Positions 3,150 through 31,399 of a DNA stretch of 64,000 bases are shown here, one piece after another; within the stretch, counting starts at the first letter, position 1, and each line of letters begins with the position of its first letter. The stretch is from Nageia nagi (Eukaryota > Plantae > Pinophyta). A model generated the notes under the pieces. It saw only the letters and a program-made list of their open reading frames with translations, had not been told where the DNA came from and searched no databases. The translations under genes were made by a program, and so were the position numbers. Where the stretch lies: the NCBI GenBank assembly GCA_050084985.1, contig JBITNC010000002.1:6262001-6326000 (forward strand), given 5' to 3'.

Positions 3150-3437
3150 AAATGACAAAACTAAGCCTATGTTGGATGATAAGGTTAAGAAAATTTTGAA
3201 TGATAAGGTAATAGCCATGTCAAATGATAAGGCAAAGGCCATGTTGAATGATAAGGCCAAGGCTTTTTTTTTTAAACCAAATATATGTGATATTAAGGTA
3301 TGAAAGATAAGAATAGTCTAACGATAATAAAAATTTAAAATTTGGACAAAATATTTTCTAAAAAAGGGATCTACAAGGATGTTTCAATCAATACTGAAAA
3401 TTATTAATATTTAATTATCCTTATCTTGCACATCTTA

Positions 3438-3477
<40 letters not shown>

Positions 3478-4140: not shown

Positions 4141-4549
4141 TGAGTAAATCCTTTTTTGTGAATATTTTCATAAAATATAGAAATATTTATGATCTATACA
4201 ATATAGAAAAAAATTACATTAAAATATAAGAAAAAATAAATAGATGAAAAATATAAATTGGTTGAAAATAAAAATTACTATAATGAAAATAGTTTGAAAC
4301 TAAAAATACTCATTAAGAAAAAATTTTGATAAAATCCATTAAAATTATAATACATGCTCAACTTTAAATATTAAGATATCTATTATTATAAAAAATTGAA
4401 TTTGAAACTTTGATGAAATTAGATACACTTAAACTACACGTGGTAAAAATAATAGGATAAATTTGACAAAATTTATAATACTTTTTCAACTCAAAATATC
4501 TATGATACCTAAAATAATTATAAAATTAAAATGAAATAGAAAATTAAAA

Positions 4550-6300: not shown

Positions 6301-7573
6301 AAAAAAAACTCACTCTTTATACATTGGTACCTATGAATTTGATGGATTGTTAGTTAAAATATGATAAAATAATTTTTTTTTCTCTTCAATGTCAATTGGT
6401 TTGTTCTATTTCCATTAATAGAACCTATAATATTTTCTACAACTCAATAAAATTAAATAGATGTATGATTATAGTTATGGACTACATGAATGAAAGTCCT
6501 CATATATGGTTTCGACCTTGTCATTTGATATGCCTTCAGCCTTATAATTTGATATGGCTCTGACTTTATCATTCGATACAGCTTTAACCTTATTTCTTGA
6601 TATTTTTCATTGCTATAACAATTTTTAAAATTAAAATTTATCTATGGTGGGGCATACCTTGTCGTTATCTTATTGTGATGGAGATTTTTAACTATAAGAG
6701 GATGAGTTTGCTTCAAAATTGATTCTCACAACTAGTTGCTCTGGTTGTAGATCAAATCACTTTTTGAAATATTATATCGCATTTAATTTATATATGATGG
6801 GATACAAGTGACAATGTTTTCAAAATAATTGATATTTTCTAATTTCATGGTTAAATGGGTCAAAATTTATATTTTTAGAAAAGCTATTTATATTGTCAAC
6901 AAGTATACAACTATAATTATTATAAACCATTAGTAAAACTACTATGTATTTAATATTATTCCTTAAAATTACGATGAGAAGATAAAATGAAAATACATAA
7001 AACTTGTTTCCAAGGGGACATCGAACTCGTGAGGTCCATGGCTAAACGTTGGGAGGTCCCATGTTCAAATCACTCAATATGTTGTAGTACTTGTCATGAT
7101 ATATTGTAGTACTTGTCATGCATGCATGATTGATTTAAATGTAAAATGGTTACGAATTTCCAAAAAAATCTATCCTCTAACATTACCCAAATAAATATAT
7201 ATATATATATATATATGTATCACTAAAATGAAAATTTGTAAAATACTAATTTTTTTAGGGAATGTTTTAATGCTTTTCACAAGCGTAAAATTAAAGACAA
7301 AATTCTAACCTGAACACATCTTTCCCACCAAAACTAGTGCTACCTATTGACCAACTGTTGGGATTCTTGCACGGCCCACAAAATTTCAATTCCTAGGAAA
7401 AAACCTGGAATGCCCAATTTTTTGGGATAATCAATCGTGGAAAAAAGTATGAACAAATGCTGGTGCTTGTGCTGCTATGGTGATGGACGACAGCGGGTCA
7501 GGAATAAAGAATTAGACCACGCATAACATAAACCATTCACATGCTCACAGGACGGTGGAAGGAGACAACTCTA

Positions 7574-7588
7574 CGCGGTCTTATCTGG
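7574..7588 (+). promoter_or_regulatory. Conserved promoter element CGCGGTCTTATCTGG, copy A
   Basis: Identical 15-mer 134-152 nt upstream of all three bHLH start codons; contains a CGCG box and GATAAG on the opposite strand. Confidence 0.7.
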
Positions 7589-7707
7589 ACCTGGTTGTTC
7601 TTAAAGCTCTCGAATCCCTATCAAAACCGTCAGTAGTCTTTACAGGGAGGCGACTATCTGGATTCTGGGCATTACAGAGGTTTTTTCCAGTTTAAAGGAA
7701 TTAAAAA

Positions 7708-8178
7708 ATGGAATCGTTCGATTATCTGAACAGTGTAGCGCTGGAGGATTTGGAGATGAGTATGATGGAAGCGAGGAGCGGCCTCTATTCCATGAATGCC
7801 CTTCAACACTATTCTTCTTCTTCCAACAATAACACGAACGTTAGTGCGCTTACCAGTTCTATTCATGTCTGTGATGGGGACGCCGTGAGCTTTACAACTA
7901 GTGTGAATTCGAGTCACCAAGAACTGCACGGACTGTGGAAAAATGGGGATTCTTCCTCCGCATTTTCGTTCGAGATCGATGGCAAAAAAGGAGGAAAGAG
8001 GAAGGGGGTTGCGACTAAGGAAGAGGATGGCTGCTTTTCTGGGGAGAGCGATCGGTGCGAGGAGGGTATGACGAAGTGCGATGCGGCTGTTAAAAACTTG
8101 GTATCTGAGAGGAATCGCCGCAGGAAACTGAATGAGAGGCTTTACGCCTTGCGCTCTGTTGTTCCTTTCATCACCAAG
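7708..8178 (+). CDS. bHLH transcription factor first exon A (N-terminus + basic region + helix 1; 157 codons); no exon 2 of its own
   Basis: Intact ORF MESFDY...KNLVSERNRRRKLNERLYALRSVVPFITK followed by AAG|GTAAGA phase-0 donor; paralogous to exons B and C. Confidence 0.85.
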
Positions 8179-10544
8179 GTAAGAAAACAAAAAACCCATT
8201 TAGTCTGCAGATTCCAACTCTTCTCTCAAGGAAAACTAATCTAATCTGCATTCATATCAATACTTAATATCTAAAACTTTGACAGGGTAGATTTCTTTCG
8301 ATTTAGATGGAGATTACAGGGATTATTAGAGTCTCATCTGAATGTGAAATTCCAACCTGATTCGTACAAATAATCTGTGGAACTGTTAAAACTCAAACGC
8401 AACAGTAACTGTCCATCTATTCGGTATAATTTGATCTTCGTATGTTACACATTGCATAGTTCCTTTGCTGTCTTCTTAAATTATAAGAAACGCTACAGAC
8501 TTTCTAAATATATTATTTAGATTTTTACTCTATTTTTTTATTATGAGTTATAAATTTGTGTGGGGAATTGACATTTGTTATATGTTACATATCTACTGCA
8601 TACTATAAGGGAGAATTGAATATGGAATCTCTCGCTATCCACTTGAAAGTTTTCAACTAACCCTTTTTCCAACTCCACTACACATGTTAGATTTTGTTCT
8701 ACTTTTTCAAAAATTTAGTAATATTACTTTTAAAAAAAAATTGACCTTTTTTTTTTATAGAAATGTGATTTTATATAGAATTGATAAATATAGTAATAGT
8801 ATTGTAATATGTAAAAACAATTAAATATGTTTTTAAATAATTTTAATTATGATATTAAAATTTATTATTTTTATCATTCATATATATATATAGATAATTT
8901 TGACAACTTATTGGTATAGTAATGAACATCATTAATGTTATTTTTAAACTTTATTTTCAATTATCTTAGAAACATTTTTTTAGGTTATTGAAGAAAACAA
9001 ACTACAATGCTAAAACTTGTACATGTGAACTTGGTAAGCCCTTGTATATGTGAATTTGTATATGTAGTAAGATTTTAAAACTTGTTTATAAAGTTTAAGA
9101 GAGTGTTAGAAAATTTTATTGAATAGAAAATGCATTGCAAATGGGATGGGGGTTGGGTTTGACTGTTGGGTCAATTTGATGAAAGACAACCACCTAGATA
9201 TGAAATCTAGTTTAAAGGAAAAAAAAAATTCTTGAAGGATGATTTCCTCTCATACATACATATATATATATACTAAGCATGATTATTATGATGATAATGA
9301 ATCTCATAAAAATTATAGTTCAAAAAGGAAAGATATTTCTTATGAAATTGGATATTGAATACATATGTATTTAGTAAGGGAAAAAATTACAATTTCATAA
9401 AGTTTTATGGTAGAATATTTAGTTTTAGTGTTTGTCTTAAGAAAAGTATTTAGTTTAAAGCCTACCTTTTAATGAGAAACATTCTAGGGTAATTTTAAGA
9501 GATGCAAGGTCATTGTATGGAACATAGGACTATTTCAAGAAACATAAGACTAGTCCAAAATTTATATAGACATTGCAATATTTGGTTTTAAAGGATGATT
9601 TTGACTTTTATACTTAATTCAATTTTCTAGAATTTTTATTTTTTAGTTCAAAATTACTTTAAATGGTAAGTAGGTTAGATCTAAGATAAATGCATTATAT
9701 AACCCTTTAATATATAATACACATTAGTAATGAAACTCAACTCAAATTTTTAGGGTTTTAACCAAGGGTGTAGATGTTTTCTAGGTATGTGAAGGTAGTC
9801 TCCTCAAGGGAGTATTCTTGATTTAGCTCAAGGCTAGAGGATACACTACATAAAATAGTTTTGATATACTCCCTTATATATCCAAAAAATGTCAAGAGAT
9901 ATCATTCCTGAGGTGCCTATTCCATTTCTTGGTATTGCGAATTATGATTTCGAATTGTGCTATGTTTGATCCACCTAATAATATTTATATAGTTTTTAAA
10001 TAATTTTTTGAAATCTATTATTCTTTTTTTTTTTTAAATAATAATGTTGATTTATTTTTTTTTTAATATTGAAGCTTGACATACATACTCACATGTGACA
10101 TTTTGGCTCTCCACTCCACCCCCGACTGCAGTTATAAGAACCTCTCTCGATGTTAATGAGTGGTTGCTTAGGGCTAAGGTTTAGCTCAAGGCTAAAGGAC
10201 TCTCTCAATATACATTAGGAAATCTATTTGTTTTTAATATCTAAGGTTAAGAAAACAAAACTTAAAACTATTTTTTTATTCACCATATTACTCAAAATAT
10301 AAAGGAAAAATATTAATTATATTTAAAATTAAGAAAAATATCCAAAATACTTCTATAATTTTATATAATATCAAAATTTATTTTTATTTAAAAAAAAATA
10401 CAATTTCAAAAACTCTTTAGATCTATTAAATCATATAAGATGCAAAGCCAAAAGTATACTCTACTAATTTTATTATGCATCCATTACTAATTTTATTATG
10501 CATCCATTATCTTCTTTAAAATTTAAATTTTCATAATATCCTAA

Positions 10545-10761
10545 ATTATTAAACTTAAATTTATTAGCTAATAAATTATTACAATGATTTGTAAAGTAAG
10601 AAAGAGAAAGTATTGTTTGACTGAGTGATTAAATGCTTTTCACGTTCATAATACCCTCAATTATTAAACTAAAATTTAGTAGCTAATAAATTATTACAAT
10701 GATTTGGAAAGTAAGAAAGAGAAAGTATTCGTTCGACTGAACGATTAAATGCTTTTCACGA
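10545..10761. repeat. ~115-bp tandem duplication upstream of exon B
   Basis: aattattaaac...tagctaataaattattacaatgattt...aaatgcttttcacg occurs twice (from ~10545 and ~10659). Confidence 0.9.
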
Positions 10762-11046
10762 GCATATCATTAAAAACAAAAAATCAATTCTATACGTATT
10801 TTCCACCCAAATTAATTAATCAAGCGACCGACGGTGCGGGCCATTGCAGAACCCACAAATGTCCTTCCCGCGGAGAAAAGAATTTGAGAATTCCGAATAC
10901 CCGTCTTCTTGGGATGATCAATCATGGAAATGCTTCCAGTGAGACTGCAGGTAATGAATAAAGTAGTAGAGCACGAGAATCACGAGCAGATCAATCATTC
11001 ACAATCCACCAACCAGAGTTCTCAATACTCATATTAGGAAAGTCTA

Positions 11047-11061
11047 CGCGGTCTTATCTGG
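11047..11061 (+). promoter_or_regulatory. Conserved promoter element CGCGGTCTTATCTGG, copy B
   Basis: Identical to copies at 7574 and 26988. Confidence 0.7.
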
Positions 11062-11198
11062 GCCAGGCTTTTTCTTATAGCAAGTCGAATCCATAGCAAT
11101 GTTCCACTTTATCAAAGCCATCGGTTCCCTCTACCGAGTGGCGATTATATCTGGGTTCTGGGTATTACAGAACTTTGCTATTTTGAGGTAAAGCAAAA

Positions 11199-11678
11199 AT
11201 GGAATCGTTTGATTATCTGAGCAGCGTATCGCTGCAGGATTTGGAGATGAGCATGATGGAAGTGAGCAGCGGCGTCTTCTCTGTCAATGCCCTTCAACAC
11301 TATTCTTCTTCTTCCAATACCATGCCTACCACTTCTATTCATATATGTGATGGGGACTCCATGAGCTTTACAACTAGTGTGAATTCGGGTTACCAAGAAC
11401 TGCACGGATTGTGGAAGAATGGGGATTCTTCCTCAGCATTTTCGTTCGAGATTGATGAAGGAAAAGGAATGGCGAAAGGAGGAATGACGAAGGGCGTTGC
11501 GAAGAAGCAAGAGGAGGACTGCTTTTCTGGGGAGAGCGATCGTGGTGAGGAGGAAATGAAGTGCTGGAATAAGAAACGCATGACGGAGGGCAAGAACGTC
11601 GTCTGCGAAAGACAGCGCCGTAGGAAACTCAATGAGAGGCTTTATGCATTGCGCTCCCTTGTTCCCTTCATCACCAAG
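11199..11678 (+). CDS. bHLH transcription factor first exon B (160 codons); no exon 2 of its own
   Basis: Intact ORF MESFDY...KNVVCERQRRRKLNERLYALRSLVPFITK followed by AAG|GTAAGA phase-0 donor. Confidence 0.85.
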
Positions 11679-12587
11679 GTAAGAGGCCAAAACCCATTTA
11701 AATAATTCGAGACTTGGGAGTGTATATAATATTGCAGTCCGTAGCTGCAGATTTTATTTCAGTTATGGCTATGGGCATCTGCATAAAACATGCCATTCTT
11801 TCAGAATAGGAAAACTAATCCAATCTGCATTCATATCAATAGTTAAATATACAAGAAACAATAAGAATGCTTATAATCTATGATATTATGAGATCTATAT
11901 AAGTCATGGATCACTTCTAGCATTCTAGGCTGAAAAAAAATTACTTGGTGTTGTCTTGAGGGTCTTTGTTAGATTCAGGGACAAACTGATCTTATTGTGT
12001 CAGTGTGATCATCCTCATATTTCCTAGTCGAACATCTTTCAGGTTAGAAGAAGGATAAGATGAATCTAAATGTGGTGGTCTTCTTTGAACTATTGCTGAG
12101 TAGGACTTTCCTAAGATTGAATATTTCTTGATGAAAGGGATAATGCATCTTTAGTCTTTATAATTGATTCATGATTTTAATGTATAAATTATCTGAATAA
12201 GTAATAATATCTACCATGTATTTAATATATTTAATAGTAAACAAAGCAAATGAAAATAAAATGTTCTTTGGATTCTATCTTAACATTGAATAATCTACAG
12301 ATATACTACTTCTAAAAAAGTATTGATTTATTTCAATATGTAATTGATGAGAGTAAACTCTTAGCTGAACTAGAAGAAATCTGAGAATAAACAAAATGAA
12401 ACACAACCCACAAGAAAGTTAACTTTTAAGGTCCTTATTCTTACATGAATATGGAAATGGTAACTAGTATTACATTTATTTTGACTACTCATCCAAGTTC
12501 CAACTGAGGATAACCAGTATTTATTTTGACTAATATTCAACTGAGGATAACCATTTCGCTTTCCAGGTAGCATTTTCTGGTGCATCT

Positions 12588-12675
12588 TGAAGATTGTAGG
12601 GTTTATCAGAGTCTCCTCTGAACTTCCAATCTGAAGATTGTAGGGTTTATCAGAGTCTACTCTGAACTTCCAATT
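12588..12675. repeat. 44-bp tandem duplication within the conserved intronic block of copy B
   Basis: tgaagattgtagggtttatcagagtct(c/a)ctctgaacttccaat x2. Confidence 0.95.
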
Positions 12676-13149
12676 TAATTCGTACATAAATAATCTCTAA
12701 AACTGTTAGAAGTAGCCATCTTTCGTACATCAAATGCAACAGTAAACTGTAAATATGATTTGATCTTAGTATGTTTACGCATAGTATAGAGTCTTAAAGC
12801 ATAAAATAGTTTTTTTTTTTTTTTTTTTCAATTAAGTTGCATAGTTTCTATTTGACGGAATAGATACGCCATTAAAAGCAGTTTTTACATTTTTTTTTTT
12901 TGCCCTTATCAAAATAAATAAAAAGAAATTTATTTTAACATTCTTAAATTCAATTATTTGGAAGATCTATCAAAATTAATAGTATATATAATATTTATGT
13001 AATTAAATTGCTCTTTCTAAAAAATAAGATTCATAATAAAATAATTGAGTTTGGGATATTTATAAAAAAAAAACTTCATAAAGTAAGAAATTATAAAAAT
13101 GGTCTTGTATCATCTTAAGTCATAACTACATTTATATTGTTTGTTGGGC

Positions 13150-13645
13150 ATTTTTCATACTTTCTTCCCACAAGAAGAATAAACCACCTTCCACTATCCA
13201 CTTCGCATCCATGGTTGTACTTTGTAATGAGGGTTGTCTAAAAGAGGTTGCTTTGCAAAATATTCATGATATCATAGACTCCTATGTGTATGTCTCACTT
13301 ACAGTATGTGAAGAAAGCCTTGCCCATGATCCATACTCCCATTCTCAATGGCAATTAGTCGAATACATAATGTTCCTATGTTGCAATTTCCTAAATAAAT
13401 ATTCAACTTCCTTAACAAACATATTCTATACATATTCTGCAATCATTTTGTTGGTGTAAGGCTTTCTTCTAAATGTAGCACTATAATAGATAGACATATG
13501 TGGAGAAGTCTATTATGTCATGCACATTCTACAACTCATGCACAACCTCATTGAGATGATCCTTTGTACATAGTGCAACCATGGGGTGTGGAATGGGCAG
13601 AGTAGAGGTTGTTTATTCTTTGTATGGGAAAAAAGTGTGAGAGAC
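13150..13645. mobile_element. Fold-back / MITE-like element with ~150-bp imperfect terminal inverted repeats
   Basis: 13150-13300 (ttcccac...agaataaac...ccatggttg...gaggttg...catga...atagact) is the reverse complement of ~13490-13645. Confidence 0.7.
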
Positions 13646-15899
13646 ATCCATGAGACAATCTGAATGCAATCATGACTTAAGGTGAGAGAGGGTCATTTTT
13701 GTAATTTCTCAATTTGTGAGGGTTATTTTTGTAAATGTATCTTGTTTTAATTATATTTATTTAATATTTATAATAATATAATGTTAGATTTTAATTTTAT
13801 TTTTTAAAATATTTAATCAAATTATTCTAGTGATATTATTTTTATGTTCATCCATGTTAGAGGAGTTGGAAAGTAATGGAAACACTCTATGGGATGTCAA
13901 GGTTAAATCTTCCCACCCTAAGTGGTTAAACAAATAAAACCTTATAGAAAAATGAATTATGATCAAGGTCAATCTTGAGTAACTTTGATGGAATAAATAC
14001 CTCTAATTATGATATATCAATCAAAAGCAATCCCTATAAAGGAGTTATGTTTTATCCCACACACACATATATCGATAAATAGATGAACATATAATATTAC
14101 ATAGAATCAATATAAATTAATAATTGTATAGTAATGTAAAAATAATAAAATATATTTATTGATAATTGGTAAAACTTAGACATTTAATTATGATGAAAAC
14201 TTTAAACTTTATTAATTTTATACATTAAAATATGATATGTTTTAAAGTTAAAATTTAAAATATGTCATAATTCTTATTCATTAATATAAATGTTGTATGA
14301 TTTTAAAACTTTCTTAGAATATTGTATTCATGATATTAGTATCAAGAAAGGTATATGTTTTCTTAGTACAACTCATGCTCACAACCTTTAATTGGACGAG
14401 ATTCATAAATAATATTAGATACAAGGCATACCATGTAAACAAGCAAAACATATGTTAAATTTTGTGAATAAATATTATGCTAATGAGCTATTCTTCAATT
14501 ATATTTAAAGGAATAAAAATTTAATGCTTTAATTATAACAAGATTATTTTATTAGTCTTATGAGAGCCTATTTCACCCTTGTCCCTTATAGGTATAATTA
14601 TTGATCTAAGGCTGCTAAGTTTTCTTAATGGAATATGGCAACATCAACAAAGAATGATAAAAAATAAAATATATAAGAAGCAAAGAAAAATGAAAAAATT
14701 TAAAAAGGGAAAGGACATATGATTATTCAAAAGAATAATAGTAGATTACATTTAATTAAGTGAATAATATAGAATAAAAAAATGCGATACTAGAGCAAAG
14801 TATTGAAGTCTTTAAGAAAAGTGTAAGAACAAAGTGAAATATAATATAAGCAATCTCTAAGAAAATATGTGTGGGTTATGTTATTCCATCTCCCATTCAA
14901 GCTATACTCTTAAAGATATTTGTGGATCCAAATTTATACAACAATATCATGGTGAAAATTAGATAATTTTGATATGGACATTAAACTATTTCAGATGATT
15001 CAGCTTATGTAAAATATCCAAATATGATTATGTATCTTAATAGTGTATTATTAGTCACACAAGCCCACCTTCCTATTCCACTCTATGAGAAAAGATCAAA
15101 CTACAACAAAGGGATTAAACCTAAATTAGACCTAGTTGAAATTACTTGTTCAAATTTATGCACTAAGCATGAACTTCCACACATAATAATTATTCTTTAT
15201 GACCTTACTTAACATTTCATTTATTATGTTCAATTACAAATTTTTGAAACATAATTCTACAATTTTTCCTAATTTGACTTACCAAGGTTCAAAGTGAACC
15301 ACTTGCTCTATCAACAAGAAAAGGATAATACACCTAAATTCTAAGAGGATAATTTATTATCTCAAATCTATGGGAGGGTAAATAATTTGTATTAATTAAT
15401 CAATACCTACTATTCATTTCTTAAATAAAAGCATATTCTACAACATCATTTGAAAGCAATAAAATATATAAGAAACTACCTAATATTAAATTTAGTCTAG
15501 AGGTATATAATAACATTTATAAATATTTCATCCTTCCATACATTTAATAAATACCAAAACAATATTACTATAATAATGCCTACAACATTAAATTACTCTC
15601 TTGAATCTTAAACTTTTTATTAAAATCCTAGACAACTATTGATGTTCTTATTTGTATGCTTTACTTGTAATAACTTTTCTCCTTCTAAAACCTATGATGT
15701 GCAACCTCTCTTTGTACTAAATGATCTCCTCTTAGATATACTTTTGATTAGCTCCCTAAATGAGTGGAAATAACATTTATTTATAGGCTTCCTTGATGGG
15801 TACATTGATGTCATTCCCATTAATGGTGGTACTAAGGCAAGCATTCATAATAATGGTGGTAATTGAGATAGATTTGGCTCCATTCTTTGTAAATATTTT

Positions 15900-18800
15900 C
15901 CAATACATCTTTTAAAATATATAAAACTTATGTCTTCCAAAAGTGGCTGGTGTAGGTTCCTTTGGTTATATATTATCACATGTTTTATAAGAGCTAAATT
16001 GTATAGGTTCTATAATGTGTGGGTGCAAGTTTTACCTTCTAATCACTATTAGAAATTCTAAATATATATATATATATATATATATATAGATTATTTCCCT
16101 TTCAAAAATCATGGGTGTGAGCTCTCCATGTTCGTTATCATTGGTTTTACAAATCACAAAAATTTAGTCTTCCAAAATATGTAGGTTTGATATGAAGGAC
16201 TTGCTCAATTCTTTCACTATGATATATTTTATTAAGTATTAAAATTAGTTTTTTTTTTCCAAAACCATTAGGTATGAATTGATCTACTTACATTTATTTA
16301 TTAAAGGTTTTGCATTTTACAAATGACATTTTTCATATTCTACAAATTATACAATGTGTGTCTTCCAAAATTCACAGGTGTGATAAGGATTATGCATTTT
16401 AAATTTGTGTGAAATAAAACTTGTCCTTAACAATTTCTACTACACCATGGGTGTCATGCAATGCTCCTACATCAAACTCTTGGGGTACAAAAATATGCGA
16501 GCTTCTACTCATAGGTTCTCATTTCAAATGAGAAGCTTATTTAAATGAGAAAACTCAAGCTTCTAAATCCATGAATCTTCTTCAAGTCCTTATCCCTTCC
16601 AAAAGATAATGTATTCTTTGAACACTTTACCTTTTATTTTCTTAACTAATCTTTCTTGTGATGTCTTCTTAATTTTTTCTCTCTTTTTATTTTGTAGTTG
16701 ATCTATCTAATCTTTTACTCCTAGGCTTTCTCCTTTTGGTCATCCTTTATCTCTATGATATTCATTTTTACATATGGATGAAAGTTTAAAATATTAAATA
16801 TAGGAGATATATTTAATCCATGAGGTAATTCAACCTCAAGCAATATTTACTTTATTTTTACATAGTTTTATCTTCTTATACTTCAACTTGTTACAAGTCC
16901 CTTTTATAACCTCTCATTTTGCAATAATACCATCACTAAATCACCCACTAAGAATGACTACATACCCTTCTCTTGTCATCAATCCTCCCTTTGTACTTCA
17001 TATTTCTCTCCTAGATTTATTTTTTGTGATTACATTGTGGAACTGCTTCATATGCTCTATAAAGTCTTCAATAAATACATTCTTTATATCAACTACCACT
17101 TTCATTAAATCTATAAATCCTCTTGGTGATCTTCCATACATAATATGAAAAGGTGAAATAATTATCAACATATTCACTAAGTTGTTATAGGTAAACTCTT
17201 CTTGGTATAATATTATGCATCCCATTACTTTTGTTTATCTCCCCCTAGATATTTAAATAAGTTTTCTATAATCCTATTTATCACTTCACTTTATCCATAT
17301 ATTTGAGTATGATAGATTGAACTAAATTCCAATCTCATGCCCAATTTCTACCATAATATTTTCCTAAAATATCTTATAAACTTAGTGTATCTATTGGAAG
17401 TTATTCTTCTTGATAATCCATGCTATCTTACTACCTCTTGGAATAATAGTTTACAATATTTGAAGCATCACTAGTTATTTTGTATGGTATAAAGTCTTTT
17501 ATCTTCAAGAATTGATCCAACACTATGAAGATGCTATCATGGCCACTATGTGTTCTTAGCAATCCCAATATAAAATCCATGTTAATTTCTTCCCAAAGTC
17601 TACTAGAAATTGGTAAATTTTTATACAATCCCATATTTTTACTAGTCCCTTTTACTAACTAACATGCTCTACATCTAGCAACAAATTTCACTACATATTT
17701 TAGTAACCTATGATAAAAGCATTTCTTCATCCTTTTATAATTCCTTCATGTCATCTAAACCTACTACAACTTTTCTACCTAATGTATCAAATTTACCTTA
17801 TTTTGGCTATTTATGTTTCTCAAATCTTAGCAATGAGTTTAAAATACAAATTCCTTAGATAATTAATGCTTCAACTTCTTGAATGCCTATATGATGGCAT
17901 ATAACTTCTATTCATATTTTAAATATCTTTATTTTGACTCATTTAATTTTTGGTTAAAGAATGCTATTAGTTTCCCTTTTTGGCTTAATGTCATAGCCCT
18001 AATCTCTTTTCCTTTAGCATCATAATTAACTTGGAACACCTTATTGAAATTGATTCCCTTAATATTGACTTCTCCATTATCCTCTATTTTAATAATTTGA
18101 AATTCTCTTCTACCTCTAGGGTTCATATAAATATTTGCTTTTTCATGTAGGAAGTGAACACTCCATAAATCCCACTAAAGTTTGAAATAAACTTTCTATA
18201 GAAACTAGCCAATCCATAGAATATTTGAATTATATGATATTCCTTAGTATAGGCCACTCCTTGATCATATCTACCTTAGCTATGTTTTCATCTTCAATCC
18301 ATCTCTTGAGATCATAAATCCTAACAATATTGATTCTTTTTTAAGAAAGAGCACTTTTTAAGGTTGATCATAAATCTTTCTTACCTTAATCTTAATAATA
18401 CTTGCCTTAGTTGTTACAAGTGTTATTATTTACATTTAATATTTATAAGGATGTCATCTACAGATACTAAGATAAACTTTCCTGATAATGGTTCCATGAT
18501 ATCATTCACTAATATTCTCATAAAAGTACTTAAGGTTCTCATCAACCTAAAAGACATAACTAACCACTCATACAATCCAACTTTTTTTCTTAAAATCATT
18601 CTTACATTTATCCCCTTTTCAAATCCTAATGTGATGATACTCACTCTTTAAATCTAGCTTTTAAAAATATCTTGCTCCACATAAATAATATCATAGGTCA
18701 TCCATACAAGGTATGGGAAACTTATTTCTTGGGATCTAACACTAGTGGTACTACACATGGACTAAGGTTATCATTAATTATTCTTATTTATATCAATTCA

Positions 18801-20700
18801 ATTCAATTGTAATCTTCATGTCCACTCTATGGGGTATCTTCTTTAACAAACTAACTCCAAATATTAAGTCTATCTGGTGGGAGATCTTTTTCATTGATGG
18901 AGATCTTATTAGTAATTCTTGGGTAACTATATCAACATAATCATCAATTATATATTCCACTTCATTAGGTATTTTCTCTTCCTTTATCTTTTCCTATATG
19001 GAAATATAGAATAATAAATTTCATTTTCTTTAAAATCATTCAAGAATTTCTTACTTTATAACAAACTTATTTCGCTCTAATTGCTCTCTTCAGTTTTAAG
19101 TTTTAATGGTGTGAATTCAAAATTTTAACTATTCTTCCAAATGGAGAGTATATTCTTCTTTCAATGATGTATTACATTTATAACATACTACCATAGTCTT
19201 CCAAAGAACATGACAAGCATCCATGCATATAACATCACTCCAAAAATTATCAATATACACTCCAAGTACAAGATTTTTCCTATACCTTTAGGAAACCATA
19301 ACTTGATGTCCCTTATCTAAGCATGAGACTTTATGTGGTTATGGATGGGTATTATAAGTCTTCAAATTTATCTTATTAACCATCTATGTTAATATCATGT
19401 TCTTAGTATTTCCATTGTCCATAATCGCAATACAAACCTTTCCTTCACTTATGCACCTTATCCTAAAGATGCTTCTTCTATACCATTGCTCTTCTACTTT
19501 TCTATTTGGAGTGATCAAATTTCTCCTTACCATGAATTTTTCTCTAGCTTCAGTTGCAATAGGACCTTTATTATCTTCTTCTTCTTATTCTTTAGTGTAT
19601 TGGGCCATATTTATTGTATTATCATTATATATACCATCTCTCATTGGTTCCTTACATTCAAATGGCCTATGGTCTTGAGCTCCATACTTGTAACACTCAC
19701 TGAACTTATTAGATTTTTGGTCCCTTCATTTAGATTGATGTCCTTTTCCTCTATATGATTGATTTAATTTATTTCCCTCTTAGGGTTACTTGAACCATAA
19801 TCTTCTTCTTTCTTCTATGATTTATCATATTTTTCAAAATATAATCCTTTATCTTTTCTAATATTGGAATTCTAAATGGCTTTTCTTGCAAACTTATCCT
19901 CAATATTTAGTGTATAATAGTATGTCTCCTGTATTGAACATATGTTCAATATTCCTATATCACCCTAAATGTTCAATCTTAATTCATTTATGTACCTTTA
20001 AATTTTTTCCTCGATCTCTTTGGTAAGCCCTACTCTAATGATCAATTGATAAAATTCCTTGGTATAATCCTTTACACTCATCTATCTTTATTAGAGATTT
20101 TGTATCAATCTAAGTAAGCTCAATTCATACTTTTATAAAATAAATTTCTTCTTTAACTTTGTTAACATTCAATTCTAAGACTTGATGTTGGTTTTACCTT
20201 CCTTCACTCTTTTCTTTTAAGTTTATTCCCACCATAATGACACATTTTCTTTTAATGTTTTGAAAACAAACATAACCATTTTAGCATCTTTGATATTTTC
20301 AATATTAAAATATTTCTTTAATTTGAAGATATAGTCAATCAACTCTTTTGGGTTTAAGCTTCCATAATAGTTAGGAAAATGTATCTTTGGTTTACTTCAA
20401 TTCTTCACTATTACCTTAGCATGTCTCATTTCAAGAGAATATTCCTCTTCTTCTAAACCAGTATCTTCTTCATATTAATTGGATTCACTTTCTTCCAACT
20501 CAACATATCTTCTTCCTCTACGGTGGCCTCTTTCAGTAACTCAATGATTTACTTCTTCTACACCTACCAATAATTGTTTCATCTATCATAGTTCTTCCTC
20601 CATTGTTTCTTCCCTTGTATTGCATCTATTTGATCTTCATCCTCCTTTTTGGAATTCTCTAAGTTATTCACCAAATGATCTTGGTCACTACTACATTCTT
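15900..20700 (-). mobile_element. Decayed Ty3/gypsy retrotransposon, CRM-like chromovirus (gag-PR-RT-RNaseH-IN)
   Basis: Minus-strand relics: RT GLYEWLVMSFRL..TLSTFMR..VSVDDILI (18426-18644); RNase H FQVNYDAKG...LIAFFNQKLNESK (17929-18040); integrase GLYKNLPISSRLWEEINMDFILGLLRTHSGHDSIF (17431-17634); gag ~19900-20600; possible 3' LTR starting TGATG at 16474. Confidence 0.85.
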
Positions 20701-21249
20701 CTTCCCTAGATATGATAGGTATAAATTGCTACTATTATAGTTATGAATTATTATTTCTATAGTTATGAATCATGAATACAATGGTGATGAGCTATTAAAA
20801 TCTTATTATTGCTAAATTATTTCATTCAATACTCCAAAAAGATGAAGATATCTATCAAAATACTAAAAGGAAATTCAAATTTATGGTGGGAACAAGTCCA
20901 AAAGGAAAATTTTAAGGTAAAGCAAAGATTAAAATCTTGGAAAAAAAATGTTGAATAAGTTAAAGTAGAAGTTTGTTCCTACAAATTATAAATTTAATGT
21001 ACTTAGAAAACTCTGAAAATTTTGACAAAGGGAGATGAATATGAAAGACTATATGAAGGAATTTTATTAATTAACCATTATAATTAGACATACTAAGGAG
21101 AGCAAGGAAAATATTTTTAGATATTTCAAAGGATTGAGATTGTCCATTTCTACTATCCAAGTTGATAAGTCATGATAGATGAATTTCTCAAATAAGAATC
21201 ATAAGAGATTTGTTAGCAACTCCTTTCAAATATTTTTTAGGCTTGGCAA

Positions 21250-22870: not shown

Positions 22871-24739
22871 GAGACTTGAGGCATGGGGATGATTGACTAT
22901 CAAAGATAAGGTATAACCCTCCATGATAAATGTATAGTGCAAGTGGTGAAAGGCACAAAAACATGGAAAATTCTAATTATCACTTCATCTCTTATATACT
23001 TCCTCTCAATAAGTGAGTAAGGAAAGGGATAGACTTTCCTTCAATGGTTCTTACATCAATGTTTGTCAAAATCCCTAGTTCTTTTTTAATTAGAATCACT
23101 TGATGAGCTTAACAATAGATTATATTATGGATTAGATGGAAGGGAGTAAATTCCCATAAAGAATTTTTTATTAATTCCCTCAATATTTGGTGGTATTATA
23201 TAATTAATTTATTGTGTGCTCCTATAGCTTAAATGAAATGGGTTCATGCCAAGAAGTTCCTTAAATGAGGTATTATCCTAATTTAATATTTCATGCCCAA
23301 GCAAACTCAGGATTAGATTCCATGAAATAGCTTCAAATGCATGTTCAACCTAAATAATACAAACAAATTAACTTATGATATCATTATTGAGCTTACTTCT
23401 TTCTCTCTATTGTACAAAATTGGAGTGAGAATTCAAAATCCTTAGTGGAAGGATTGGTATTTTAATGTGGACATTCCACTTCTTAATTATTCATCCTAAC
23501 TTGGATATTCATGGATTTTTCCTATTTTTCATATGATTCCTTGACTCAATAAGTGTGATTTAATTTCCACTAAGTCTAGATGGAAATTAATGTTCCTCTC
23601 TATATGGACTCCTTATAATTAATGTTGAATACACTCACTTGGATACTTATGAACCAAATTCTTCCTATTGGTGACCACCTAAAATACTTAAGTGTTCCTA
23701 ACCTAAGGTATACTTTATGCAATGATTATGAGTCCTATATTCATATATTTTGGTCTTATATGTTGCTTATTTTTTTCCCCTTTTATGCTTGGTAATTTTT
23801 CTTGGCAACATGCTTTATTAGGCAACTCTTTCATCCATATCATGTCACTTCATGAAGTTCGATAGATTTTAATAAATAGTTTTCTCTTTCATATTTAAAA
23901 AGTTCATAATTGGACTATTTTCATATATTAACCTTCTATAGGATCCATTATTTTTGATAAAATAAAAGTGTTTAATTATATGTGTTTATAAATATGTACT
24001 CAAGCAGATAAAGTTGTAATGGATTTAGATCATATATACTTTGTTTGATTGTTAGGAGAATGCTTCTTGTTATATTAATTAAGTCATTATAGATAATTCT
24101 TTATAGGATCAAGCATGCAGGTCTCCATCACATTGGTATCCTCTATTGTATGTTTGATCCTAACCTACCAACTAACATTAGTCACAACCCTTGCTAGTGT
24201 AGAAGCAACTCCATGATGTAAACACTAGCTACTCATGAAAACAACATGGTGGGTGGATGCATCGCTTGAAATTTCTTAGCACATTATGGGGTACGATAAT
24301 AAGAGAATTAATGATATGATACTCCAAATCATATTGATGGTATATGGACTTCACACACCTTTGGTATTCACCACCTACACATGGCTAGGAAGATTTGGGT
24401 ATGGTAGTAAATGATGGCATACACAAAGGTGATGGATGGGACATTCAACCACTTATTTCTAATTAATGGTAGTACTTGATGAAAAATGAAGCACCTTTAA
24501 TAGATGCCTCCCATAAGGTTTGATGATCTCTCTTTTAATATTTTAACATGATGGGTTATTTGTTAAGATGATCATCTCAAGTCATTTTGTACATATTTTT
24601 TTAAATTTATCCTAACCTCAAGTTAGGGTTAGTGTGAACTCACTTTAGGGTGTGACTTATTCTACCTGATCTTCTTTTATTGTAAAGGAACTTAAATTTA
24701 TTAATTAAACTTTCTTTTTATCAAAAAACTATTTATCAT

Positions 24740-25570
24740 CAAAGATATATATAAATAATCAACCAGATTGATAGATGTATTGAGTATACACCATGTAGGT
24801 AGAAGGAATGAGTCTAAAATACACGAAGAATTCTTACAAGGAATATTTTTAGATCTCTTTGATATTTGGGAAGCATTCTAGGACCATAGAGTATGGAAAT
24901 GTTTCTTCATTCAGGAAGGATTCTATTTTAGTAATAAAAAATTATGGATTCCACAAGGTTCCATGAGGGAGAACCTTATTAGATAACTTCATGGGGGAGG
25001 TCTTGAAGGACACTTTAGAAGTTACAATACGTTGCTATAATTAAATAAAAGGTATTATTATCTAGGATTATGAATAGATATAAAGTATACAAAACTTATC
25101 CATTGGTAAAAGGAACTAGTAGGAATATAGGGTTATACAAACCATTACTATATCTTAATGGACCTTAAGATGATATTAGTGTAGATTTTATGTTGGGATT
25201 TCTTAGAATACATAAGAGAAATAATAACATCTTCACAAAATGGTACACTTTATACCTTTAAAAGGACTATCAATTCTTCACGCAATGCTTAGATATTCTT
25301 TCCAAGAAGTAGGGAAGAAATTATATGGATTACTAAGATTAAAATTAGAAATAGGGACACCAAGTTCTAATCCATTTCTATAAGAGGTTATGGAAAATAT
25401 TAAGCATGAGATATTTGGATTTGAGTTTAACAAATCATCCATAAATATATGGATAAACCAAAGTAATCAATAAGAGTTTGGGCAATCTATTGACCAAAAT
25501 AGTTGGACACCAAATTACTTGGCTAAGTTGAATTTGCTTGCAATAACTCTATAAATAGGAAAATAAAAGT
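24740..25570 (+). mobile_element. Ty3/gypsy (CRM-like) integrase fragment
   Basis: WIPQGSMRENL...LHGGGLEGHF, GLYKPL...DDISVDFMLGF, DTKF, GNLL relics with stops. Confidence 0.75.
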
Positions 25571-26987
25571 TATCAATATATTATTTGGAATCAGATACTT
25601 ACATCTATATCATGATAATACATTATTAGTAATTAGTATAGGGGTCGCTTGTGTAAGTATGTGCAAAAGATCCCCAAAACCCTAATTGATGCAGATGATG
25701 TATGTAAGGAAATCATTAGTAGTATTTCCCAAGTCTTTGTTGGGTTTGCTGGTGTTTATTTGTTTTTAGTCTTGATGATGGTTTTGACTATGCGAGCTAT
25801 GCATGCATACTAGATACATCTATTATAGGTCATCTTGACAATGGTCATGATTTGAATCATGCAAACCCTAATGCTTTCGAAAATAATCTTTTACACCCTA
25901 ATTTGGATGATAAAAGGAGATTTATCGCCCACTCAACACAACAAGATGGAAAGTGGTGTTGAAGCAACATTGGAGGTGTTGGGTAGTAAATGCATTATCT
26001 TTTACAATATATTTGGATTAGTCACATCAAGGTCATCTCCTTGAAGCTTTGGATGTTTGTGCAAAATGAAACTAGATGTACCAATTTCTTGTTATTTTTC
26101 TTCAAAGCTTTACAAATCATAATTCCCCTTAGGACAACGCTTGGAGCCCAAATTCTAATTACTTAAAGGATACTTCTTTCACTCAACATATAGACGTGTT
26201 AGAGCAACACGAGAGGTAAATGGGAGTGCTAAGCTCGTATATGGATCATATTTAAGGCTTGAGTGTTGGTGTTGAATGTCCCTCACTTCATACATTACTT
26301 TACGAGTAAGTGTATTTAGTCAATGACAATAGGTCCATCATCTTATTTAAAGACTCTTGGAATATGATTTATTTATTCTAAATAAAATAAATTAAATTAA
26401 AAACTCAAGACAAAATTGTGATTCGCCATATCACTCAAGGTGTAAGTGAAGACCATACTTTATATTTAAATTATATTTTGAAATTTACTTTTTTTAAGAA
26501 AAAGAAAACTATGATTCTAAAGACTCTCAAAAAAACTAAGAAAGATTTTTTATCTACCAAATCATTTAATATACTAATAAAAAATAAATTATATTAACAT
26601 CCACTTAAAACTATACACCACTAAGTTTTATTATTCATTAATTATCTCTTTTAAAATATATCATTTTCCTAATATATTAAATTAATTATCTAAATTTAAT
26701 TAGTTAAAAAAAAAATTCAAGTATAAATTTGAAAACAACATTTTGAACTCCACACATACTTTCCACCCAAAGTAGTGCTATGTTGGAAAATATTGGAATA
26801 TCCAACTTCTTGGGCTGATCAATCATGGAGAAAAATATGACTAAATGATGGTGCTCTGGCTTTCATGGTGATGGTGTGACAGCAGGTAAAAAATAAAGAA
26901 TCACGAGCCCACACATCACATAAATTAATCATTCACAACTACCCAATCAACGTCCACAGTACTGATATTAATAGGGCAACAACTCTC

Positions 26988-27002
26988 CGCGGTCTTATCT
27001 GG
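26988..27002 (+). promoter_or_regulatory. Conserved promoter element CGCGGTCTTATCTGG, copy C
   Basis: Identical to copies at 7574 and 11047. Confidence 0.7.
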
Positions 27003-27137
27003 GCCTGGTTTTCTTACACCAGTCAAATCCATAGATCCATGTTCTACTTTATCAAAACAGCAAATTCCCTTTTATAGAGTGGCCATTATCTCGATTGTGG
27101 GCATTACAGAGCTTCTTAAGTTTAAAAGAATCAACAA

Positions 27138-27581
27138 ATGGAATCGTTTGATTATCTGAGCAGAGTAGCGCTGCAGGATTTGGAGATTGGTATCATGGAA
27201 GCGAGCAGCGGCGTCTACTCTATGAATGCCCTTCTACAATATTCTTCTTCTTCCAATACCATTCCTACCACTTCTATTCATGGGGACGCCCTAAGCTTTA
27301 CAAATAGCGTTAATTCGGGTCACCAAGAACTGCACGGACTGTGGAAGAACGGGGATTCTTCCTCACCATTTTCGTTCGAGATCGATGATGGAAAAGGAGG
27401 AAAGATGAAGGGCGTTGCGAAGAAGCAAGAGGAGGACTGTTTTACTGGGGAGAGCGATCGAGACGAGGAAGGTATCAAGTTCATGACGGGTACCAAAAAA
27501 ATGGTATCGGAGAGGAAGCGCCGCAGGAAACTGAATGAGAGTCTTTATACCTTGCGCTCCCTTGTTCCCTTCATCACCAAA
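27138..27581 (+). CDS. bHLH transcription factor first exon C (148 codons), nearest to the shared exons
   Basis: MESFDY...KKMVSERKRRRKLNESLYTLRSLVPFITK followed by AAA|GTAAGA phase-0 donor; 2,352-nt intron to exon 2. Confidence 0.92.
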
Positions 27582-29933
27582 GTAAGAAAACAGAAACCCA
27601 TTTAGTCTGCAGATTCCAACTCTGATCTTATCTGCATAAAGCATGCCATTCATAATGAATAGAAAAATAACGTGTGTTCTTATCAATACGTAATAATTAA
27701 TACACTAAAGAAGAAGTCTTCATTTTCAATTTTTTTACAGGGTAGATTTCCTTCAATTTATGGTGAGATTATAGGGTTTATCAGAGTCTTCTCGGAATTG
27801 AAATTCCAACCCTATTCGTGCACACATCATTTGTGGAACAGTAGAACTGTTAAAAGTAAACATATTTCATAGATTATTATGATGGCCTGTCATCAGATGC
27901 AATTGTTAAACTGTCCATCTATTCAATATGATTTGATCTTGGCATTGACGTATGTTACTTTGGTGTCTTGTCTTGAATTATCAGAACAGGCTTTATGAGC
28001 ATTAGATTAGACATAAATTCTACTTTTTCTAAAGTTTAACCAAGTTTCTTTAGTAGGATTATTGTGAGGAATAAAGTTTTGAATTTTGATAAAGATGAAA
28101 TGACAAATAGAATTGACAAAGATATTAATAATGCGGTAAGGTAAAAATAATCAAATGATTATCTAAGTTTTTAAAGCTAAGAATTAGATATTTATTTATA
28201 AGGATAATATTAAAATTAATTATTTTTTACAATTGAAATTTGATATATTTTAGCATTAAAATTTAAAATATGAAATAATTTTTATTTCATGATATAAATG
28301 TAGTAAGATTTTAAAATTTACTTACAAATTTGGTATGGTGAAATGTATAAAGTTTTACTTTACAACTTCATTTTTATTAAATTTGGAGCTTGATTTTTTT
28401 CTCTTTAAATTTAGATGTTTTATTTTAGTTGCATTTAAAACTTTTAGTATTGTATATCGAACCTCTGCCTATGTGGTTTTGCTCATTGATGAGTAGGTTA
28501 GGAGGGTTTTGAGGGGTGGGAAGCCCCCATCGATAATGGGGTTTGGGGGCAACATCCCTAAAGCCAAAATACACATGGTTTTCTCTAATTATTTTCCATC
28601 ATTATTAGTGTAATTCAATGGATTTAAAGGATATTTTTCATTATTGCAAGTGCATATAATTTATTTGATATATCATTTTATTAGGGATATGATTTACATA
28701 TGAAATGAGACATTATAACATATAAGACTAGCATATTCATATGTTTCTAAAAGATGTTACTAAAGCACAATTCTTAAAGCTTACAGATAGGCCTATTAGT
28801 CCTCTCAACATGAAGAGGGAGACTCTTAAAATGGTGATGTTGATGCACGAGGGAAAAAAAATCAGGTCATATCTTATTAGGTGCTAATTGTAAGTACCAT
28901 CTATAATTATTTGATAGCCTATGAGTCATATATTTTTCGTAATATGATAGATAGAACATCTAACCAAATGAAAGACCATCATTCCCAACCATAGGAGCCA
29001 TGCACCATCATCACTAATGCACAAGACACTCATCTGTAGAACATAGGGCTAGCCTCCACTCCACCCTTGATCAAATGAAACCACTAGAGGTATGTGCCAT
29101 CTAGCCTTGCATTCAAGACTGTACAACATGGTCCCTTGGTGAGACTATGGTGATTCATCCAACCCAAGCTAGCTAGCTTGTTCAAGGCATGCAGCGAGGA
29201 ACCATGCTCGCATGCCAGCGCATGTGCATGTGTCCCTTGTCTCAATCGTGAGAGAAGGAGCATTCTTAGCCTTTATGATATGAAAATATCATGGTACTTT
29301 AGCTTTGTAATTTGTCTCTCCATTTTTTAAATCATCATGATGGATATTCATAAAGATAAAATATTGCATCACCTAGCCACATACATATTATCTATTAATA
29401 TATGATCATTTTGTATTCTCTACATGCATAAGGGAGATTTTTGAATATGGGTCTCTCAAATTTGAGAGTTTTCAACATTTGTTGCTTCGAACTCCCCTAA
29501 TATGAGTAGAATAATTTAACTAGCTTTATGTGGAGATTGATTTTTATAATAATTTATATCATGTTATTATGTTTTTGCATTGATATTTTATTTAGTATTT
29601 TGACGTTTCATTAACTTTTAACATACAACTCTTGATATATGTATCAAATATTCTTATTTTAAAAATACATCATACAATTTATTTTTGAAATAAAGTTTGA
29701 TTAATAATAAAAGTTAATAATATTAAAATCACTATTTCAATTTCAATTGATATAGTTTAATAAGAATTCCATTTTTAATACTATTTCTTGGGGAAGCTTA
29801 AAAGAAAAATATAGATTGAAAGATGAAAAAAACTCAAACAACTAGCTTCCCAAAAATAAAAATAAAAATTAAACCTTAAGAAAAACACTAACTTTATTAT
29901 AAATAACCGTAAGTTGTAATGTGGGTTTAACAG

Positions 29934-30185
29934 ATGGACAAGGCATCCATCATTGGAGATGCCATCAAATATATCCAAGACTTGCATAATCAGGCCAGAG
30001 ATATCAAGGCCGAGATTACAGCCCTGGAGTCCAACAACGACTGCTCTTCTTCAACAATAACAGCTGATGTGGATGACAACTATCATCAGTCTCAAGATAT
30101 CAAGTCTCACATGCCCAAACTCGAGCCCTCTATGACTTCAACATCAGAAAGAGAAGGATTTGGCCATGCCAATGTGGCTCTTCAA
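29934..30185 (+). CDS. bHLH exon 2 (helix 2 MDKASIIGDAIKYIQDLH + linker)
   Basis: ttaacAG|ATGGAC acceptor and CAA|GTAAGT donor, both phase 0; completes ...PFITK|MDKASIIGDAI, typical of FIT/bHLH27/bHLH35 (IIIa). Confidence 0.93.
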
Positions 30186-30265
30186 GTAAGTAAATGCCAG
30201 TAATTTGAGAACTCACTCAGGATGATGATGATAAGGTAGTGTGTAATGATCATATTCTTTACCAG

Positions 30266-30439
30266 GTCGACATTTCACAGATAGAACAGAGAACATTTCA
30301 CATTAGAATGTTTTGTAAAAAGGAGCCCCGTGTACTAGTCCTTTTGACAAAGGCCATGGAGTGCATTCAACATCTGGAAATTCACAATTCTAGTCTGACC
30401 TGCTTTGACAGCATCATCATCAATACTATTATTGCAAAG
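30266..30439 (+). CDS. bHLH exon 3 (ACT-like domain VDISQIEQRTFHIRMFCKKEPRVLVLLTKAME...)
   Basis: 80-nt GT-AG intron before it; ccAG|GTC acceptor, AAG|GTATGT donor, 58 codons; matches the C-terminal ACT-like domain pattern of group III bHLHs. Confidence 0.9.
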
Positions 30440-30520
30440 GTATGTCCATAGTCTGCTCTTTTCAGAAAAACAAGGAAAAGAAAAATCATTTTTGTGATGG
30501 CTGTTAAATTTTTGGAACAG

Positions 30521-30598
30521 ACAGAAATGGAGGTCGAATCTCTCAGAAATGCCATTATGGGGAGTGCTTCCAAGTACGGTTTCCATGCACCATCATAA
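30521..30598 (+). CDS. bHLH terminal exon 4 (TEMEVESLRNAIMGSASKYGFHAPS*)
   Basis: 81-nt GT-AG intron, in-frame acceptor, TAA stop; AATAAA at 30667-30672. The C-form protein is 315 aa. Confidence 0.85.
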   Translation, partial: TEMEVESLRNAIMGSASKYGFHAPS

Positions 30599-31399
30599 GT
30601 AAAAGCTTAACTTTCATATTATGGATAATACGACGTTAACCTCCAGTCGCAAAAAGAACTAACCTAAATAAAATGATGAAGAATCCTTTTAGCATGTATT
30701 GAATTTCCATATTCTCTCTGATCTTATTTCTTGTGGTAAGATTTGCATGATATATCGCAGGATTTCAAGCAACTCTTTTGGTATAAAATGTATTAACTAC
30801 TCTTATTGGGTTGGGAGTTCAGATTTGTGAATGGGAACATGGAAGACGTCAATTATGATTCTAAATGTAAATTAGTAATTAAATGATTTTATGAACATGA
30901 TATATTTAATTATTGTATTTTTTATTGATTAAAAAGTATAAGAAGTATTGATAACCTTGTGTGTTGTTAATGTGATATATAAGATATAACTTTTCTTTTA
31001 TTTGTTTAAGTCATCACAAAAGGTATCTATTCTCTCAAAACTTATCTCAAGTAAGATCCTACCATCTACTCGATAGGATTTTAGTATGTTTCAACTTTTA
31101 GGGGTAGAGAGTTTTGAACCTGGGCCTCCTATATGTAAGAGCTTTGAACTTATCTCTTCAACTTCCCTATCTATCAATTCAATTGTAAGATAGAAATTTC
31201 AAGATTGATTTTTTTTTTCAAATTAATGAAATAAAATATATAGTATTGTTATATTTTTTAAGATCTGAGAATGTCTTAAAAAATGAAACCTGTAATATAT
31301 TAGGTCTGTAAAATTTTATATATTTTATGTTTTAATTTTAAAAATAATTTACATAATTAAATATTTTTTTACACAAAATATTGATTCAATTAAATATGA

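Follow-up and report, generated by a model that had tools for sequence, protein, structure and literature searches.

Three tandem first exons and a single set of downstream exons at a bHLH35-like locus of Nageia nagi

A 64-kb stretch of DNA from the conifer Nageia nagi (contig JBITNC010000002.1 of assembly GCA_050084985.1, positions 6,262,001 to 6,326,000), hereafter the window, in which all coordinates are counted from the first letter, contains a gene of the basic helix-loop-helix (bHLH) family with an unusual exon arrangement. The first exon is present in three tandem paralogous copies (1A, 1B and 1C), each lying in a cassette that includes a conserved upstream region and the beginning of an intron, and exons 2 to 4 are found once, downstream of the last cassette (Table 1). 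The GC content is about 30% across the window.

Exon layout and protein family

Exons 1A, 1B and 1C are free of internal stop codons, begin with MESFDYL and end with PFITK in all three cases, and each of these tandem first exons has an ATG start and a GTAAGA donor of its own (n = 3). They are 83-87% identical to one another in DNA and about 70-72% in amino acid sequence, a similarity far above chance (tblastn E values from 1e-58 to 1e-71), and every insertion or deletion (indel) that distinguishes them is a multiple of three nucleotides (nt). The acceptor of exon 2 reads ...TTTAACAG and is followed by ATGGAC, the donor of this exon is GTAAGT, and exons 2-4 were all re-derived in phase 0. Joining the three first exons to this single set gives coding lengths of 975 (A), 984 (B) and 948 nt (C), equivalent to proteins of 324, 327 and 315 amino acids (aa), with first introns of 21,755, 18,255 and 2,352 nt, respectively. 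The joined models were checked for frame and length by a local script, and database searches were run exon by exon.

No second copy of exons 2-4, intact or decayed, was detected in the 64-kb window by tblastn (E≤10, word size 2) or blastn, and the first 18 nt of exon 2 (ATGGACAAGGCATCCATC, 29934-29951) are unique in it even when up to three mismatches are allowed. The initial annotation of this DNA had described the three paralogous copies of exon 1, with open frames, in-frame indels only, the PFITK end and a phase-0 GTAAGA donor, as well as the single set of exons 2-4, the three protein lengths and the intron sizes. Translation and alignment bear out the description of the exons, re-derivation returned identical values for the rest, and the decayed copies of exons 2-4 behind A or B that the same annotation had named as evidence against its reading did not appear in the tblastn, blastn and 18-nt searches of the window.

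Table 1. Features of the bHLH35-like locus in the window
Feature	Position	Strand	Remarks
Cassette A upstream region (putative promoter and long 5' untranslated region)	7260-7707	+	aligns with the upstream regions of B and C
Variable exon 1A	7708-8178	+	157 codons: N-terminal region, basic region KNLVSERNRRRK, helix 1; phase-0 GTAAGA donor
Intron 1 stub (duplicated 5' portion) following exon 1A	8179-9095	+	similar to the C intron as far as C 28331
Cassette B upstream region	10739-11198	+	weaker homology to the C upstream region extends back to about 10257
Variable exon 1B	11199-11678	+	160 codons; basic region KNVVCERQRRRK; phase-0 GTAAGA donor
Intron 1 stub (duplicated 5' portion, with insertions) following exon 1B	11679-14324	+	similar to the C intron as far as C 28327-28332
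Ty3/gypsy retrotransposon, degraded remnant of pol (reverse transcriptase and integrase pieces)	about 16900-19000	-	in the B-C spacer, antisense to the gene
Cassette C upstream region	26700-27137	+	conserved blocks common to A and B
Variable exon 1C	27138-27581	+	148 codons; basic region KKMVSERKRRRK; helix 1 with R>S and A>T; phase-0 GTAAGA donor
Intron 1 proper	27582-29933	+	up to about 28332 common to the A and B stubs; 28333-29933 unique
Constant exon 2	29934-30185	+	end of the loop, helix 2 (MDKASIIGDAIKYIQDL...), linker; single copy in the window
Constant exon 3	30266-30439	+	predicted ACT-like domain
Constant exon 4	30521-30598	+	C-terminus ...SKYGFHAPS, then the stop codon TAA

Two further open reading frames (ORFs) touch the first exons. 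The frames of A and B continue past their donors to 8244 and 11705, respectively, and an antisense ORF of 175 aa (7672-8199, minus strand) overlaps exon 1A almost exactly, which may reflect codon composition.

Exons 1A, 1B and 1C match the Pfam HLH profile with 21.1-25.4 bits (cut-off 20.7) over positions 7/8-28 of its 53 positions, that is, over the basic region and helix 1. The basic region of the cassettes, SER(N/Q/K)RRRKLNE, aligns with SERKRRRKLNE of conifers; E9 and R13 of the ER.RR motif are retained in A, B and C, and variation is found at positions 5-8 and at position 11, where the residue is N, Q or K. The conifer consensus of helix 1, LNERLYALRS, is retained in A and B and altered in C. 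Helix 2, encoded by exon 2 (MDKASIIGDAIKYIQDL), aligns column by column with the Araucaria, Cryptomeria, Taxus and Ginkgo proteins, with a phase-0 join. Exon 3, scanned as an isolated piece, matches the plant bHLH ACT-like domain (PF22754) with an E value of 5e-5 and 23.9 bits (cut-off 27.6), a shortfall that probably comes from scanning part of the domain alone; the exon aligns well with homologues that bear PF22754. The alignment of exons 2-4 with gymnosperm homologues extends through to the C-terminus (SKYGFHAPS against SQYGFHAP in Ginkgo).

The closest proteins are bHLH35-like proteins of gymnosperms, namely A0A0D6R8W4 of Araucaria cunninghamii, bHLH35 of Cryptomeria japonica, KI387_018324 of Taxus chinensis and Gb_26391 of Ginkgo. 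The Araucaria protein is 50% identical over exon 1 and is the top match for exon 1C among representatives clustered at 50% identity. A protein search with exon 1A covered subjects of 86-275 aa, a range that leaves isoforms of 315-327 aa outside, and gave distant bHLH35 matches only. Among the matches listed for the Araucaria protein query or the exon 1C query there were no annotated isoforms of this genome, although clusters at 50% identity could conceal one. Judged by these homologies, the locus is one bHLH35-like gene of a gymnosperm, with a predicted C-terminal ACT-like domain.

Junction contigs, upstream regions and origin of the cassettes

A word search with exon 1A led to four small sequencing runs, the type of which is recorded as 'RNA? 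(a guess)', and Logan contigs of these runs were aligned to 7300-13299. Three sources are distinguished here: X1, which is 99+% identical to the window; X2, from a third species in the same study as X1; and X3, from another species in a second study. Coverage by X1 is confined to 7412-7591, 7797-8178 and 11288-11678, leaving the introns uncovered. The A contig of X1 (7797-8178, one mismatch in 382) and its B contig (11288-11678, four mismatches in 391) both run on beyond the donor into an identical 18-letter sequence, ATGGACAAGGCATCCATC, which equals 29934-29951. The junctions of 8178 and 11678 with 29934, for which the initial annotation had proposed a search, are thus both present in X1. The B contig of X3 also continues past 11678 with ATGGACAAGGCATCCATC, which places the B junction in a second species and a second study, and the A contig of X3 ends exactly at 8178, as expected from a branch between two continuations. 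In all, the junction with exon 2 is seen for A in one species and for B in two. Both A and B are found in relatives that are 92-96% identical.

The boundaries of the X1 unitigs are informative in themselves. Exons 1A and 1B have exactly 12 nt in common at their 3' ends and contain one exact match of 32 nt (7795-7826 = 11286-11317). With a word length (k) of 31, these matches predict unitigs beginning at 7797 and 11288 and reaching 18 nt into an exon 2 common to both, exactly as observed, and this agreement indicates that the forms joining A and B to exon 2 coexist in one library. The word depth of the junction unitigs is similar, at 9 for A and 11.7 for B. Coverage is restricted to exons and the junctions of two different heads lack introns, which favours cDNA over genomic DNA as the source of the junction contigs and makes an origin from DNA retrocopies unlikely. 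Template switching by reverse transcriptase was rejected as a source of the junctions, since the last exon letter in the contigs is the G of A and B, where C has an A, and since homology that could guide the switch is lacking on the exon 2 side. No contig joining A to B occurs among the aligned contigs of the runs, short unitigs being uninformative on exclusivity. As a separate observation, the B-type contig of X3 lacks 72 nt (24 codons, EEDCFSGESDRGEEEMKCWNKKRMT) at 11513-11584; the gap is in frame with ends that are not of the GT..AG type, and probably reflects an in-frame deletion in the genome of the X3 species.

The upstream regions of the three cassettes have an invariant 15-bp element in common, CGCGGTCTTATCTGG, which lies at 7574-7588 in A, 11047-11061 in B and 26988-27002 in C, 120-138 nt before each ATG, and which has three exact occurrences in the window against none expected. 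The contig of X1 at 7412-7591 matches the window with zero differences and indicates that the stretch upstream of exon 1A is transcribed. Because the 15-bp element falls inside this transcribed contig, it is, in A at least, part of a long 5' untranslated region and does not lie upstream of the start site. A separate promoter for each cassette is plausible in view of the conserved upstream blocks and of the transcribed contig upstream of A. A 115-nt tandem duplication (10530-10760) immediately precedes cassette B, and upstream of cassette A there are minisatellite arrays with a period of 24 nt (ATGATAAGG-type units), in both orientations, at 3107-4148 and 6504-6593.

Homology between the cassettes runs from about 450 nt 5' of each ATG, across exon 1, into about 750 nt of the intron. 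Its endpoints in the C intron coincide, 9095 behind A corresponding to C 28331 and 14319-14324 behind B to C 28327-28332. An identical intron endpoint behind A and B places the right duplication breakpoint at about C 28330, inside intron 1. The alignments indicate that the extra cassettes were produced by partial tandem duplication of exon 1 together with its upstream region and about 750 nt of the following intron, with the third copy probably added by a later unequal crossover. Another conceivable origin, in which two complete genes each lost exons 2-4 independently, was discarded, as it would not give one breakpoint twice. The spacers between the cassettes measure 3 kb (A-B) and 15.5 kb (B-C), with no trace of exons 2-4 in either; the B-C spacer was enlarged after the duplication.

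Within the duplicated intron portions, two short blocks exceed the exons in conservation. About the first 43 nt after the donor are 95% identical between A (8179-8221) and C (27582-27623), and a block of 39 nt is 95% identical between A (8229-8267) and B (11808-11846); these blocks could be splicing-control elements or conversion tracts. The A intron stub of X2 contains 40 additional nt at 8228/8229 that match a block (ATCTGCATAAAACATGCCATTC...) kept in the B and C introns of the window and lost from its A intron.

Interpretation, rival explanations and comparison with known systems

We consider it likely that the locus is one bHLH35-like gene whose 5' part was duplicated twice in tandem and whose A and B heads are spliced to the single exon 2, with mRNAs for three proteins to be expected. 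This reading is directly supported by the anatomy of the locus, the single exons 2-4, the common breakpoint, the contigs that join A and B to exon 2 and a long-term ratio of nonsynonymous to synonymous differences per site (pN/pS) below one. In the proposed course of events, a 5' part made up of exon 1, about 450 nt before it and about 750 nt of intron 1 after it would have been tandemly duplicated twice, every copy would have retained its ATG, reading frame and GTAAGA donor, and exons 2-4 would have remained single. Transcripts beginning with exon 1A or 1B would then be spliced over 21.8 kb or 18.3 kb to the lone exon 2, and the downstream cassettes, having no acceptor, would be excised as intron. 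The three products would be distinguished by their N-terminal region, basic region and helix 1, and would be alike in helix 2, linker and predicted ACT-like domain. By analogy with the vertebrate Pcdh and UGT1A loci, each cassette may have its own promoter and the donor closest to the cap may be the one used; exon 1C would be used likewise, and the mRNAs would be full length and translated. The heads may also differ in DNA or partner preference, the residue at position 11 of the basic region being N, Q or K.

The pN/pS ratio of exon 1 is below one for all pairs of cassettes (Fisher p values of 1e-5 for A-B, 0.016 for A-C and 0.002 for B-C); it is 0.38 for A-B, a comparison that covers solely the two 'orphan' lineages, and over 29 bHLH codons of this pair pS is 0.57 and pN 0.08. 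Identity is 83-87% in the exons versus 67-71% in the upstream flanks, a difference of about 15 points, and indels of any length occur in the flanks, those of the exons all being in frame.

Several observations weigh against the splicing of three heads to a common exon 2. The recorded type of the runs is a guess at RNA, and exon 2 is visible for 18 nt only, in contigs rather than reads. The single-copy status of exons 2-4 applies to the 64-kb window, and further copies of exon 2 may lie beyond it. In X2, a contig of 818 nt reads from 7703 to 8479 through an intact A donor without branching; in this species exon 1A is transcribed but unspliced, or its spliced form is rare. Between the window and X2, exon 1A has 14 nonsynonymous and five synonymous differences, a ratio of substitution rates (dN/dS) of 0.75 that is indistinguishable from neutrality, and its divergence of 4.0% versus 2.4% for the intron stub means that the exon is no better conserved. 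Finally, neutral simulation gave probabilities of 0.23 (A) and 0.32 (B) that no stop codon arises, so that open frames alone are weak evidence.

Some of these points would also be expected if A and B were still transcribed relics of a partial duplication whose surviving donors lead to incidental splicing to exon 2, their isoforms being minor or redundant and only C being of importance. The dN/dS of exon 1A and its conservation relative to the neighbouring intron, the X2 contig unspliced at the A donor, and open frames that are only weakly improbable under neutrality all agree with such an explanation, as does the presence of complete tandem genes, not of common exons, in conifer relatives. It is nevertheless unlikely, although the strongest of the alternatives, because the low A-B pN/pS (p=1e-5) arises between two 'orphan' lineages alone, because the indels are all in frame, and because A and B come nearer than C to the conifer consensus in their bHLH parts. 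Moreover, both copies are kept and transcribed in at least two other species, and the word depths of the junction unitigs are above trace level.

Appreciably less probable is an artefactual or incomplete layout, in which each exon 1 would have exons 2-4 of its own, either lost from the assembly by collapse or belonging to complete, near-identical genes at other places in the genome, from which the junction contigs would be derived. The short exon 2 portion of the contigs (18-19 nt), taken from the MDKASII region that is highly conserved among paralogues, is compatible with this, and tandem complete genes of the family do occur in conifers. However, the copies of exon 1 are 13-17% different, and sister copies of exons 2-4 would thus be too divergent to collapse; the spacers are free of exon 2-4 traces; and both stubs end at one breakpoint that is followed by the upstream region of the next cassette, the signature of a genuine partial tandem duplication. 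The X1 contigs, in addition, match A and B of the window at 99.0-99.7%. It is hardly credible that A and B are mainly stand-alone short genes whose intron-retaining mRNAs give proteins of 178 and 168 aa with the basic region and helix 1 and without helix 2, as the ORFs extended to 8244 and 11705 and the X2 contig passing through the A donor might suggest, since half an HLH is unable to form the four-helix dimer established for the bHLH fold, X1 and X3 use the donors, which are conserved, and the read-through tails differ between cassettes and are not conserved.

The differences between the window and X2 in exon 1A are unevenly placed. At 8056-8087 (codons 117-127, just before the basic region) six are nonsynonymous and none is synonymous; there X2 is identical to X3 and partly to B and C, against the window, and X1 has all but one of the states of the window. 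This pattern could be a lineage-specific burst, produced by positive selection or by a conversion patch.

If the A and B heads are indeed spliced to the single exon 2, the locus invites comparison with three known arrangements. In the vertebrate Pcdh alpha and gamma and UGT1A loci, tandem paralogous cassettes of promoter and first exon are spliced to common constant exons. 'Multiple variable first exons' in vertebrate loci were reportedly described by Zhang, Haws and Wu in 2004. As in these loci, the cassettes of the bHLH35-like gene are tandem and paralogous, each combining a conserved element upstream with a coding first exon that has a donor of its own; the constant exons follow downstream as one set, the array comes from tandem duplication, and later cassettes would be removed as intron. 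Unlike them, the array has only three cassettes, belongs to a plant transcription factor gene, and has as its variable exon half of one domain (basic region and helix 1) instead of a whole ectodomain or substrate-binding domain. Promoter choice, whether stochastic or tissue-specific, is here a presumption, and no enhancer or insulator logic is known for this gene. A bolder proposal, to which we give slightly less than even credence, is that a Pcdh/UGT1A-style device operates on this plant transcription factor across species, with three independently regulated heads spliced over long range onto one dimerisation and ACT module, yielding three factors that would differ in expression and/or in DNA or partner preference. 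If this is true, a single locus encodes three bHLH factors.

Type I alternative first exons (AFEs), mutually exclusive first exons that share their downstream exons, are also frequent in plants; Chen et al. (PMC2174465) give 1,378 rice and 645 Arabidopsis clusters. Similarly, the first exons of the bHLH35-like gene are apparently mutually exclusive, have their downstream exons in common and change the N-terminus of the protein. In contrast to type I AFEs, they are paralogous, are all coding, replace part of a DNA-binding domain, are spread over 20 kb (with splices of 18-22 kb) and are kept in related species. A text search of PMC2174465 found no mention of duplication or of homologous first exons. 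Mutually exclusive first exons in plants are thus already known, and what is new is that paralogous first exons exchange half a bHLH. The initial annotation had known of no such design for a plant bHLH, and in the literature searched there is likewise no description of a plant bHLH with paralogous variable first exons.

The third comparison is with the bHLH35-like genes of other conifers, which resemble the locus in domain order, in the end of exon 1 (...ITK followed by MDKAS) and in a tendency to tandem duplication. SUGI_0662360, 0662370 and 0662440 of Cryptomeria and KI387_018324 and 018325 of Taxus are tandem complete genes with distinct C-terminal halves, whereas at the Nageia locus the 5' part alone is duplicated and the copies would use one 3' half. 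The Cryptomeria and Taxus genes and this locus therefore offer a natural comparison of 'own tail' and 'shared tail' outcomes. In the Taxus pair KI387_018324/018325 the exon 2 regions are almost identical, with divergence elsewhere, which hints at gene conversion.

Splicing of several heads to one tail would represent a route by which a transcription factor family could grow in a plant with very long introns without duplication of whole genes, long-range splicing rescuing a partial 5' duplication. The half of the bHLH that reads DNA would be swapped and the half responsible for dimerisation, with the ACT domain, would stay constant. The arrangement is also a warning for the annotation of gymnosperm genomes, where gene finders would label A and B as orphan fragments or pseudogenes and lose two of the three isoforms.

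Transposable element remnants and other features of the window

The initial annotation had described the long introns as filled with transposable elements. This is borne out in part, by one degraded Ty3/gypsy element of the minus strand (about 16.9-19.0 kb). The element is recognised by an integrase-like piece at 17434-17634 (minus strand), which matches residues 1157-1217 of the Ty3 Gag-Pol protein in a PDB sequence search (E=3.6e-6), and by a reverse transcriptase-like piece at 18429-18644 (minus strand), which has an xVDD motif and a weak match to the Ty3 reverse transcriptase (E=0.33) in collinear order. Pfam scans of the spacer ORFs gave no significant match to a transposable element domain. 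A weak match to ANAPC4_WD40 at 17932-18126 (minus strand) lies within the gypsy remnant and was set aside as most likely noise. The region from 16 to 20 kb has strongly negative GC and AT skew.

Upstream of the cluster, two adjoining ORFs at 1479-2197 (minus strand) encode a copia-type gag, with matches to Retrotran_gag_2 (E values of 3e-11 and 5e-12) and to DUF4219, and represent a copia fragment. At the far end of the window, an ORF of 115 aa (62435-62779, minus strand) contains leucine-rich repeats (LRR_1, E=1.6e-9) and may be an exon of a gene encoding such repeats.

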